Sequence record: NC_031039.1
Length of the DNA stretch: 64,000 nt
Reading direction: 5' to 3' (one strand)
Part shown: positions 60,040 through 64,000 of the stretch, piece after piece
Layout of the letters: each line of letters starts with the position of its first letter
Numbering within the stretch: the stretch's first letter is position 1
Made by a program: the position numbers and the translations under genes
The notes under the pieces: model-generated
What the model saw: the letters and a program-made list of their open reading frames with translations, nothing else
Database searches by the model: none
Told to the model about the DNA's origin: nothing

Positions 60040-61368
60040 ATGAGCAATAAAACTTTTGTCTTAGATACATCAGTACTGTGTCATTACCCTGAATCATTAT
60101 TTTCTTTTGAGGATAATAAGATTGTAATAACAGAAACAGTTATTGAAGAATTAAGTAAGCGTAGAAAATCAAGTGATGAATCAGGAAAAAATGCTCGTGA
60201 TGCTATTAGATATATTAATGAACTGAGTAAGCAAGGCAATATTACTGAAGGTATAGAGATGGATAATGATGGTATTATTGTCATTGAAACTAATTATGCT
60301 GATATTGAAATGCCAGATGGCTGGAATAAAAATGATAATGATAATAAAATGCTTCAAGTCTGTCAATATTTAATAAATCAAGGTGAAGATGTACATTTTG
60401 TAACAAAAAGTCCTTTAAGAAGTCTTAAGGCAACTATTCTTGAGATTCAAAATGAAGATTTTATTACTGATAGAGTCGAAGATGAATATTCAGGTAGACG
60501 AGATATCTTATTAACAGAAGATGATCTAAATTTATTCTTCTCTGAAGGCACTATCGATACATTAACAACTGAAATGTATGATATGGACGGTAATATTATT
60601 GATCCTAGTATCTTAACAGAGAATGAATATATTACCCTAATGTCAAATACAGATTTAAATCAAACGGGTTTAGGTTACTATACAAATGGTTATATTAAAA
60701 AGTTAATTTTTGGGGAATATAACCCTTATCAAGTACAACCTAAGAATGCGGCTCAAAGATTTGCTATTGATGCATTAATGCAAACTCCAAAAGAAACACC
60801 ATTGGTAATACTAAAAGGTCCAGCAGGAACAGCTAAAACTTTTCTATCAATTGCTTCAGCACTAGATACAGTAGTTGATAGACAAGAATATAGACGGATT
60901 TTAGTTTGTAGACCAAATGTTTTAATGGAAGAAACACTTGGATTCCTTCCGGGAGATGAAAATGAAAAAATAGCACCATTAATGCGCCCTATTATGGATA
61001 ATTTAGAAGTATTAATTGATGAACAATCAGTAATAAATAATCTATTTGAAACAGAAACTATCGTTACCCAAGCAGTTGGATACTTACGAGGAAGATCTAT
61101 TCCTAATACTTTTATTATTATAGATGAAGCACAAAATGTTACACCTAAAGCAATGAAAGGTATTCTTTCTCGTGTTGGTTATGGTACAAAAATTGTTATT
61201 TGTGGAGATACTGATCAGATTGATCATCCTTATTTAACTAAAGCTGTTAATGGTTTAGCATATGCTTCTGATAAAATGAAAGGTAGTTCACTTTGTAGAC
61301 AAATCACTTTTAAAACTGAAGAAAATCAAAGATCTCCTTTAGCTCAAGAAGTAACAGAACGATTATAA
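60040..61368 (+). CDS. phoH: PIN-PhoH (PhoH2/YlaK-like) protein
   Basis: FVLDTSVL PIN; GPAGTAKTF, LGFLPGD, YLRGRS, IIDEAQN, GDTDQID. Confidence 0.92.
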   Translation: MSNKTFVLDTSVLCHYPESLFSFEDNKIVITETVIEELSKRRKSSDESGKNARDAIRYINELSKQGNITEGIEMDNDGIIVIETNYADIEMPDGWNKNDNDNKMLQVCQYLINQGEDVHFVTKSPLRSLKATILEIQNEDFITDRVEDEYSGRRDILLTEDDLNLFFSEGTIDTLTTEMYDMDGNIIDPSILTENEYITLMSNTDLNQTGLGYYTNGYIKKLIFGEYNPYQVQPKNAAQRFAIDALMQTPKETPLVILKGPAGTAKTFLSIASALDTVVDRQEYRRILVCRPNVLMEETLGFLPGDENEKIAPLMRPIMDNLEVLIDEQSVINNLFETETIVTQAVGYLRGRSIPNTFIIIDEAQNVTPKAMKGILSRVGYGTKIVICGDTDQIDHPYLTKAVNGLAYASDKMKGSSLCRQITFKTEENQRSPLAQEVTERL

Positions 61369-61369
61369 G

Positions 61370-61416
61370 AAAAACAAGGATTTGGTGGTTAATTATACCA
61401 CCAAATCCTTGTTTTT
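61370..61416 (+). terminator. Intrinsic terminator
   Basis: 20-bp stem AAAAACAAGGATTTGGTGGT/ACCACCAAATCCTTGTTTTT. Confidence 0.9.
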
Positions 61417-61431
61417 CCTATTTTTTAACAA

Positions 61432-61443
61432 AACAATGCATTA
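61432..61443 (+). promoter_or_regulatory. Late-type promoter AACA-atgcat-TA
   Basis: Motif match upstream of 61486. Confidence 0.55.
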
Positions 61444-61485
61444 TAGGAATCTACAAATAGAATGTTGATATAAGGGGGATTAAAC

Positions 61486-62412: not shown

Positions 62413-62449
62413 TAATATATTGTTTATTGAAGAAGACAACAATTAATTA
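62413..62449. promoter_or_regulatory. Divergent late promoters (minus 62413-62424, plus 62438-62449)
   Basis: AACA-atatat-TA and AACA-attaat-TA. Confidence 0.7.
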
Positions 62450-62475
62450 TAGACTAGATAAGTAGGAGGATTATT

Positions 62476-63717
62476 ATGTCATTTTTTAAAGGTATTCGGA
62501 ACATAGAAAGAGTTCAATATGATCTAGTACAATATTGTGACAAGGAATTTGTTCCAAAATTTATAGCAAGTCAAAATATTGATGAAGATAAATTATACGA
62601 TACTATTGATTTTAGTTTACAGTTAGCTGAAAAATTACATTTAGATTACAATATGTGTTTTACAATTGCAGTAATGCATGATTTTGGTTATATTGAAGAA
62701 GATGAAAATAATTTTAATACATTAATGAGCATAAAAGCAGATCAATTTTTGTTAAGATATTTTGATGGAAGTCAAATGGAGATTATTGAATCTGCTTGTA
62801 AAGAACACGATGGTACAAGTAGAGAAACAGGAATATTTACATCTTTATATTCAAAGGTTATTGCAGATGCAGATAGGATGTCAATATTGAGAATTGAAGC
62901 TATGATTCGTCATTATTGGAAATTCTATTCTAATCAAAAGGCATTCTCTAATACAGATGAGCGTCCTAATAAACTAACAGATAAAGAAATTTTTGATAAG
63001 ATGTATAGTTTTCTAAAAAAAGAGTATGGTACAATTGTATCAAAAAATAAATTATTGTTAGAAGCATCAAGAGAAATGATGAAAGATGAAATTGAGAATT
63101 CTAATAAAGTATTAAGCTCTGAAGAAGATACAAAAAGAATGGTTCTACATTTAGCTACTTATGGGGAAATCCAAATAAATAATGATGGAACGCTTACCGT
63201 AGAAAAAATAACTAAAGAGCCAATCAGTGAATCAGATCCTTTTGAATTATTTGAAAAAAATATAAAAGAATCAGTAGATGAACAACTACTAGAAGCCACA
63301 CCAAAGAATCTATCAAAGAGACAAAAGGTAGAAGATTTAATATATAAGGTACTTTCAGTTTTAGATGATACTGGAGCTAACTTGAGAAAATATAAAGAGT
63401 TCTTTGGTAAAATGAACGATGAACAATTTGATAGGTATATGAAAAAATTCCTAAAAGATGAAGATGAAAATTTTTATCTTGAAATTTTACCTAATAAAAG
63501 TGAACCTTCATTAAAGCAAATTAAAAAAGCACTAGATATCTTAAAAGTACCAACTGATGAATATGTATATCTTCGACATGATGGTCATAAAAATGATCCT
63601 ATTAGAACTGCATATAAAGTACCTGTTGGTTATATTACAATTAAGCGAGTACAACAAATTCTAAGTAAAAAGAATACTTATTCTCTTGATATTGCACAAA
63701 GAAACATGAAATCGGGT
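62476..63717 (+). CDS. HD-like domain fused to virion RNA polymerase beta C-terminal subunit (phiKZ gp149-like), exon 1
   Basis: MHDFG/ADADR HD motifs; then KRQKVEDLI..DTGAN..YKEFFGKMNDEQFD..PVGYITIKRVQQILSKK..SG, ending at intron. Confidence 0.75.
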
Positions 63718-64000
63718 TATAATTGGCTCTCCATTATAGCAATATAATGGCAAACACTCTCCTTAATTTCTGGGATATCCTAATTTTTAGGACAATCAGA
63801 AGCGAATTTGAATAAAAACCTAATATTCAAAACGTTCAACGACTATCCGAAAGCAATCATACGATTGTGAGTAGCGGTGAAATTCCGCAATAGGAGTACG
63901 GCTCAAGCTATTGGAGTGGGTGAGAATCCCTTAAATGGAAACAGGAGGTATCCTTAACGGATAAAGATATAGTCTCGTCTCTATGGTAACATAGAGCAGT
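63718..64000 (+). ncRNA. Group I intron (IA-like) in RNA polymerase gene, truncated by window end
   Basis: GGT|TATAATTGGCTC P1; AATCAGAAGCGAA; TTCAACGACTATCC (P7 GACTAT 63841) pairing AAGATATAGTC (63969); P8 TATCC/GGATA; P9 CTCTATG-GTAA-CATAGAG. Confidence 0.92.

Follow-up and report, generated by a model that had tools for sequence, protein, structure and literature searches.

Why does Bacillus phage AR9 make, late in infection, a protein in which an HD-type domain is joined to a piece of the virion RNA polymerase, and what becomes of that domain? The gene in question, AR9_g078, starts near the end of the 64,000-nt stretch of DNA that we analyzed (the window), which is 100% identical to nt 1-64000 of Bacillus phage AR9 (KU878088) and has the same coordinates. 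A preliminary description, made from the letters of the window, had proposed that the HD part is either a cleavable prodomain packaged with the polymerase or a nucleotide-binding or nucleotide-hydrolyzing module delivered at infection. It had also raised the prospect that such a fusion is already standard in orthologs, and this turned out to be so: the fusion has been described for AR9, PBS1, and BpSp. In the GenBank record of AR9, g078 is a three-piece coding sequence spanning 62476-65571, with the note 'proteolysed protein, contained only RNAP domain is found in virions, virion RNAP subunit; HD family phosphohydrolase'. The proteins of PBS1 (gp269), Internexus, and Goe21 are 99.5% identical to AR9 gp078 and represent the same gene, for which the HD fusion, proteolysis, virion location, and late expression are on record. 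With the HD-beta-C fusion, its cleavage, and its late expression already in GenBank and in three papers, none of these is a discovery as such. A 2020 review lists the virion polymerases of AR9, PBS1, and BpSp as having a unique N-terminal HD domain of unknown role, and to Iyer et al. (2021), the domain joined to the C-terminal beta extension is an 'active HD phosphohydrolase'. What is new here is a clade-wide loss of catalytic residues and a conserved motif at the junction of the two parts, neither of which is noted in the published accounts.

The part of the gene that falls in the window is an open reading frame of 423 aa (62476..63747), made up of exon 1 of AR9_g078 and nine read-through codons into a group I intron. 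The preliminary description had ended the gene at 63717, and exon 1 stops at precisely this position, with G414 as its last residue and U as its last base. In phage Goe21, g078 occurs naturally as an allele without either intron, a continuous 516-aa ORF in DNA that is 98.9% identical. This allele fixes the exon joins and the 516-aa product. In a scan of 600 nt, intron 1 scored 85.4 bits against Rfam RF00028 (gathering score, 50) over 63708-63996 of the window; a scan of 4 kb had missed it. The base before the 5′ splice site is U, and the last base of the intron is G. With a score above gathering, these splice-site bases, and an intron-less allele, intron 1 of g078 is a group I intron. It separates the G414 codon from that of Q415; in an alignment with cellular beta, this site falls in the 'pLGGKaqFG' stretch, immediately ahead of the RFGEME block. 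The intron region of g078 in PBS1 holds an extra homing-endonuclease gene. AR9 g079, which lies inside intron 2 of g078, encodes a homing endonuclease as well; it has its own mapped late start at 64330 and is therefore expressed from within the intron. The coordinates of these and the other features are collected in Table 1.

Table 1. Features of AR9_g078 and its surroundings, and genes of other phages compared with it. Plain numbers are positions in the window; positions preceded by an L number lie outside it.
Feature	Position	Strand	Basis or content
Hairpin right after the g075 (PhoH) stop	61357-61448
Divergent late promoters of g077 and g078, back to back	62413-62449	- and +	both starts published
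Late (nvRNAP) promoter AACA-N6-TA	62438..62449	+	motif match; start A62449, 27-nt leader
Shine-Dalgarno AGGAGG	62464..62469	+	direct sequence reading; 6 nt before ATG 62476
g078 HD-fold region, residues 1-230	62476..63165	+	AlphaFold, Foldseek, profile vs PDB, residue table
g078 acidic linker, residues 231-273	63166..63294	+	composition, site list, junction alignment
beta C-terminal module, first part, residues 274-414	63295..63717	+	PHROG 3233, E. coli beta alignment, intron-less Goe21
Group I intron 1 of g078	63718..64000 in the window; ends at genome position 64045 (last 45 nt outside)	+	Rfam RF00028
AR9 g079	L001 6356-7180		homing endonuclease inside g078 intron 2
P0010, 886 aa	L010 3876-6536		transglutaminase-like + fully intact HD + beta-C
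P0005, 836 aa	L012 629-3139		decayed HD + P-loop kinase-like + GNAT + beta-C
P0056			uncultivated relative; intact HD before beta-C
MarsHill (Staphylococcus jumbo phage)	L007 1220-2533		~440-aa extension on beta-C
LPJP1 (Listeria jumbo phage)	L009 1268-2500		~410-aa extension on beta-C
BpSp gp148 N-terminus	L003 2737-3441		235-aa extension
phiR1-37 g199	L008 4225-5004		record gives mature N-terminus 'Asp56'

An RNA polymerase beta module had been proposed from about residue 274 onward, and a search against PHROG families confirmed it: residues 280-405 match PHROG 3233 ('RNA polymerase beta subunit') at an E value of 3.9e-19, and the full-length relative P0003 matches at 1e-40. The module is 243 aa in full, with the rest of it encoded in exons 2 and 3, beyond the 64-kb window. 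Pfam returned nothing significant for it even at an E value of 10; the match in a protein atlas is to Rpb2 domains 6/7. A profile made from five sequences reached bacterial beta in the PDB at E 0.03 only and did not reach the AR9 and phiKZ nvRNAP structures. Spliced gp078 gave a weak, consistent alignment to residues 1150-1310 of E. coli beta (E 0.03-0.04), including RFGEME...MYKNI. This segment of E. coli beta lies C-terminal to the double-psi barrel. The subunit had been described in advance as a double-psi-barrel beta subunit, and this does not hold: the gp078 piece aligns downstream of the barrel, which is located elsewhere, since virion RNA polymerases have the C-terminal beta extension and the barrel on two different proteins (Iyer et al. 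2021). With tblastn, the module was linked to phiR1-37 g203 and to jumbo phages of Staphylococcus and Listeria and, in a further step, to 173 jumbo-phage records. It is homologous to the stand-alone beta-C subunits (phiR1-37 g203; SPN3US gp218 and phiKZ gp149 type) and aligns with phiR1-37 g203 over nearly its full length. Stand-alone beta-C subunits are virion proteins and form one piece of a beta/beta′ core that is split in five. The 2017 AR9 transcriptome paper places gp078 among the five polypeptides of the virion polymerase, with gp189/gp078 as beta. Judged by homology, the C-terminal part of gp078 is the beta C-terminal subunit of a jumbo-phage virion RNA polymerase.

The gene had been credited with a late promoter, and this is borne out by published data. 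The AACA-N6-TA element in front of g078 leads to position 62449, the one primary start given for the gene in the dRNA-seq tables of the 2017 AR9 transcriptome paper. In that paper, expression of g078 is 0.86, 39.7, and 590 at 5, 20, and 40 min, respectively, and the gene is classed as late. The AACA-N6-TA motif by itself is not enriched in the 64-kb window, with 150 matches vs 179 expected. Two late promoters stand back to back at this site: AACAATATATTA on the minus strand leads to the g077 start at 62413, and its plus-strand partner, AACAATTAATTA, leads to the g078 start. Farther upstream, the stop codon of g075 is followed by a strong hairpin, which most likely terminates transcription between g075 and g076. 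Its Rfam matches, found on both strands (several miRNA-precursor models and the OrzO-P antitoxin RNA model), are sub-threshold and due to chance.

The HD motifs pointed out in the N-terminal domain are present, namely IAVMHDFG at residues 64-71, with H68 and D69, and KEHD at 109-112, with H111. IADADR was likewise found, at 129-134; the ligand-equivalent aspartate in it is D133, however, and not D131. Pfam HD (PF01966) scores the g078 product at 18.8 bits, below the curated cutoff of 22. A word-indexed protein search with this domain recovered one relative only, and an exhaustive profile search was needed. Starting from AR9 and that relative, it gave 271 matches, 43 of them at 1e-10 or better. 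The majority are stand-alone HD proteins of ~205-235 aa; one of the stand-alone proteins is encoded in a Firmicute-like chromosome, and several match PHROG 3921. AlphaFold produced an unusable model of exon 1 from the single sequence (pLDDT 43); given a 77-sequence alignment, it folded residues 1-235 into an all-helical domain with a pLDDT of 91.5 and a pTM of 0.89. The best 11 PDB matches of this model in Foldseek are all YpgQ-like HD proteins (probability 1.0, target TM 0.52-0.67), with 2pjq, 5ihy/5dqv/5dqw (YpgQ), 2pq7, 3djb, 3b57, and 3dto at the top. Furthermore, the best seven PDB matches of a profile of the domain are all of the YpgQ/YedJ type (2pq7 at 1e-13, 3gw7 at 6e-11, 5dqv at 8e-8). 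Because of the 271-match profile search and the AlphaFold model with its YpgQ-like matches, we regard the homology of residues 1-230 to the YpgQ/YedJ-type HD family as secure despite the sub-threshold Pfam score.

Is this domain a working enzyme? B. subtilis YpgQ and the E. coli YedJ family (PDB 5DQV, 3GW7, 2PQ7) have the fold and the sequence family in common with it and provide a map of the active site. In YpgQ, H29, H58, D59, and D124 are the ligands of an essential Mn, and H25 and R136 are substrate contacts. These six residues align with K39, H68, D69, D133, I35, and H146 of AR9. The H...HD...D metal-binding tetrad of the family is thus incomplete in AR9, where H68, D69, and D133 are present and the first histidine is Lys39. 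The preliminary description had suspected that the first His is missing, and this was an understatement. We compared residues in a 77-sequence alignment of 71 outgroup relatives and an AR9 clade of six (AR9 and relatives P0001-P0005). The outgroup has His at column 35 in 70/71 sequences and at column 39 in 71/71; AR9 has Ile and Lys there. In all, AR9 carries I35, K39, N78, D112, and H146 where the family has H, H, H, R, and R, and it retains H68, D69, H111, and D133. The five positions are at least 93% conserved in the 71 relatives and replaced across the AR9 clade, His39 of P0005 excepted. H35, H78, R112, and R146, each present in 66-70 of the 71 outgroup sequences, are replaced in six of six clade members, and H39 is replaced in five of six: the column reads K, N, E, E, R, H, and the His belongs to the N-terminally truncated P0005.

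Losses within the clade go further than these positions. D69 (71/71 in the outgroup) is Q or E in three members, H111 (70/71) is N or F in three, and D133 (69/71) is V in two. The further ligands lost differ from member to member, and the stem of the AR9 clade in the tree is long, at 1.09 changes per site; together, these read as the signature of lost catalytic constraint. Since conserved residues including the first metal ligand are replaced across the clade, the HD domain of AR9 and PBS1 is probably catalytically inactive and no hydrolase, and the published label 'active' is probably wrong for these two phages.

We weighed this interpretation against the opposite one, in which the HD domain is a working phosphohydrolase, as Iyer et al. 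(2021) hold and as the second idea of the preliminary description would have it. Such an enzyme would either work in the cell late in infection or enter with the polymerase, its substrates being nucleotides, alarmones, or defense signals; being joined to beta-C, it would be tied to the virion polymerase in dose or location. The four residues retained in AR9 speak for it. So do the uncultivated relatives P0010 and P0056, which carry an intact HD in the same position in front of beta-C; by their sequences, a catalytic role exists or existed in this architecture. The N-terminal domain of AR9 is also 50% identical to that of P0001, its closest metagenomic relative, which indicates that it is under some constraint. 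Nevertheless, we find an active enzyme unlikely. K39 and I35 stand in place of the first metal ligand and the phosphate-binding His, in columns that are non-His throughout the clade except for column 39 of P0005. The differing further losses (HD to HQ or HE, D133 to V) have the pattern of relaxed catalytic constraint, and in YfbR metal-ligand substitutions abolish activity. According to the GenBank note, moreover, the HD part is not found in virions, and in BpSp an extension occupies this place without any HD signal. The absence from virions and a catalytic set that is incomplete across the clade argue against a hydrolyzing module delivered at infection. In considering substrates, we rejected a role as the dTMP phosphatase of PBS-type phages: the PBS1 dTMP phosphatase belongs to PF06941, a different protein family, and the HD domain of gp078 is thus not needed for that activity.

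A decayed HD domain might still bind a nucleotide or a metal without hydrolysis and serve as a sensor or switch in the precursor, for example by making assembly or cleavage depend on the nucleotide state late in infection, by analogy with the degenerate HDOD-type HD domains of signaling proteins. The domain is well folded and forms a pocket, the patches CKEHDG, TSLYSK, and RHYW are common to AR9 and P0001, and the ligand set is partly retained. The substrate contacts equivalent to YpgQ H25 and R136 are lost, however, and BpSp and the Staphylococcus and Listeria phages manage without a recognizable HD. On balance, a binding role of this kind seems quite unlikely.

We then considered how the HD part is separated from the polymerase. 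The GenBank note, by which only the RNAP domain is found in virions, bears out the cleavable HD part of the preliminary description; the same note contradicts the idea that the prodomain is packaged with the polymerase in the mature virion. Between the two parts lies the linker, which had been called acidic and said to end in LLE273, with ATPK following from A274 onward. This was confirmed: residues 231-273 contain 12 D/E vs 4 K/R (pI 4.2), along with four clustered [LIF]-x-E sites, at E252, E260, E265, and E273. The prohead proteases of T4 and related giant phages all cut after Glu, at short motifs and often at several sites per propeptide. An alignment of junctions that included AR9/Goe21, BpSp, MarsHill, LPJP1, P0001, P0002, P0003, P0005, and P0010 has a hydrophobic-x-Glu 7-11 residues before a conserved K-[RK] motif in 10/10 non-redundant junctions, with AR9 and Goe21 counted as one. 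By inspection, the junction of P0056 also has hydrophobic-x-Glu, for a total of 11 extension-bearing orthologs. The motif is kept even where the upstream sequences are unrelated. Its density in the pro-region is no higher than in shuffled sequence (9 [LIF]-x-E sites observed vs 7.0 expected, p 0.24), so the argument for cleavage rests on positional conservation and not on density.

Stand-alone orthologs place the boundary at the same point. In 33 of 34 IMG/VR orthologs and in phiR1-37 g203, beta-C is a separate protein of ~220-250 aa with its Met at the equivalent of AR9 ~275-278; these proteins start where A274 lies in AR9, which has 273 extra residues in front. The E273/A274 boundary put forward in advance fits both the conserved junction motif and these starts. 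From the alignments, the prohead protease most likely cuts after E273 (codon 63292-63294), at L-L-E273/A274. The record of phiR1-37 g199 places a mature N-terminus at 'Asp56', and the translation gives L-T-E at 53-55 and Glu as residue 56. We set this case aside as support for a hydrophobic-x-Glu cut: the position fits, the residue name is mismatched, and the case is too ambiguous. Neither the UFV_DC4 proteome nor the MarsHill preprint mentions any processing of the beta-C subunit.

A polymerase-only form could in principle be made by internal initiation or separate C-terminal expression and not by proteolysis, in which case the full-length product would be a distinct cytoplasmic protein. AR9 as a whole has 13 internal late promoters, able to yield N-terminally shortened proteins. 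For g078, however, there is the single primary start, the depositors call the protein proteolysed, and no Met occurs between residues 222 and 313, the latter falling inside the conserved module. We consider this origin very improbable; given the Met-free stretch, the RNAP-only form in virions must come from cleavage.

If the HD domain is a pro-piece, how widespread is it? The extension in front of beta-C differs greatly among relatives (Table 1). For those of MarsHill and LPJP1, neither Pfam nor PHROG has a matching family, and profile comparison gave no sign of an HD. AR9 and BpSp are members of one genus, and their RNAP parts are 77% identical. The BpSp extension nevertheless could not be recognized as an HD by BLASTP (E 1.2), by family profile (probability 1.3%), or by Pfam, where it had no match. 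In these comparisons BpSp is without a recognizable HD, against the published accounts, which count it among the HD-fusion phages and call the role of the HD 'unknown' or 'active', with neither the residue loss nor the junction motif described here. The HD fusion may have arisen once or twice: a free tree separates P0010 from the AR9 clade, but under the AU test a single clade was not rejected (p 0.635). The comparisons show an add-on that varies and that is confined to some of the lineages with Gram-positive hosts. Phages that lack the extension still package beta-C, so the pro-piece is no universal packaging requirement.

A broader reading is possible, and we offer it tentatively. In AR9-like jumbo phages whose hosts are Gram-positive, the N-terminus of beta-C may be a slot for interchangeable modules that the protease sets free, filled differently from lineage to lineage: P0010 has an intact YpgQ-like HD and a transglutaminase-like domain, P0005 an HD remnant with P-loop kinase-like and GNAT domains, and the Staphylococcus and Listeria phages unfamiliar modules, all with the same hydrophobic-x-Glu junction. 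The HD of AR9 would then be a decayed former enzyme retained for polymerase assembly, for head targeting, or for silencing of the virion polymerase up to head maturation.

For AR9 itself, we think it probable that gp078 is a late-made precursor whose decayed HD and linker form a pro-piece without catalytic function; the head protease would take it off at E273 or close by, leaving the beta-C subunit. The sequence of events would be as follows. The nvRNAP would transcribe g078 late from the AACA-N6-TA promoter, the two group I introns would be spliced out, and the mRNA would be translated into the 516-aa protein. Residues 1-230, a decayed YpgQ-like HD that has lost the first metal-ligand His and the phosphate-contacting His, would most likely hydrolyze nothing; together with linker 231-273, they would form the removable pro-piece. 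During head maturation, a Glu-specific prohead protease would cut at hydrophobic-x-Glu, most likely at L-L-E273/A274 and possibly at upstream sites too. The product would be a subunit of ~243 aa, co-linear with the stand-alone beta-C of other jumbo phages. We favor a role of the pro-piece in assembly or in targeting to the head, in keeping the virion polymerase silent late in infection, or in both. Against this model stands the fact that AR9 keeps three of the four metal ligands (H68, D69, D133) as well as H111.

Processing of this kind has known counterparts. Substrates of the T4 gp21-type and phiKZ gp175-type proteases (Alt, internal proteins, and head proteins of giant phages) have an N-terminal segment removed, as would be the case in AR9. 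The candidate sites of AR9 are hydrophobic-x-Glu like the ITE and LTE of T4 and are clustered in the pro-region; SPN3US uses A-x-E, whereas the sites in AR9 are L/I-x-E. The pro-pieces differ in size: capsid-targeting peptides of T4 are ~10-20 residues long, but the predicted pro-piece of AR9 is a folded 230-aa domain plus a linker.

This follow-up argues against the published 'active HD phosphohydrolase' label for AR9 and PBS1, and it provides E273/A274 as a concrete predicted cut site. The added detail is of modest value to specialists in jumbo-phage transcription. It bears on a question that the AR9 authors asked in their 2017 paper: what stops a virion polymerase produced late from transcribing early genes ahead of its packaging? 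One testable answer to how the virion polymerase is silenced would be a subunit whose pro-piece can be removed.
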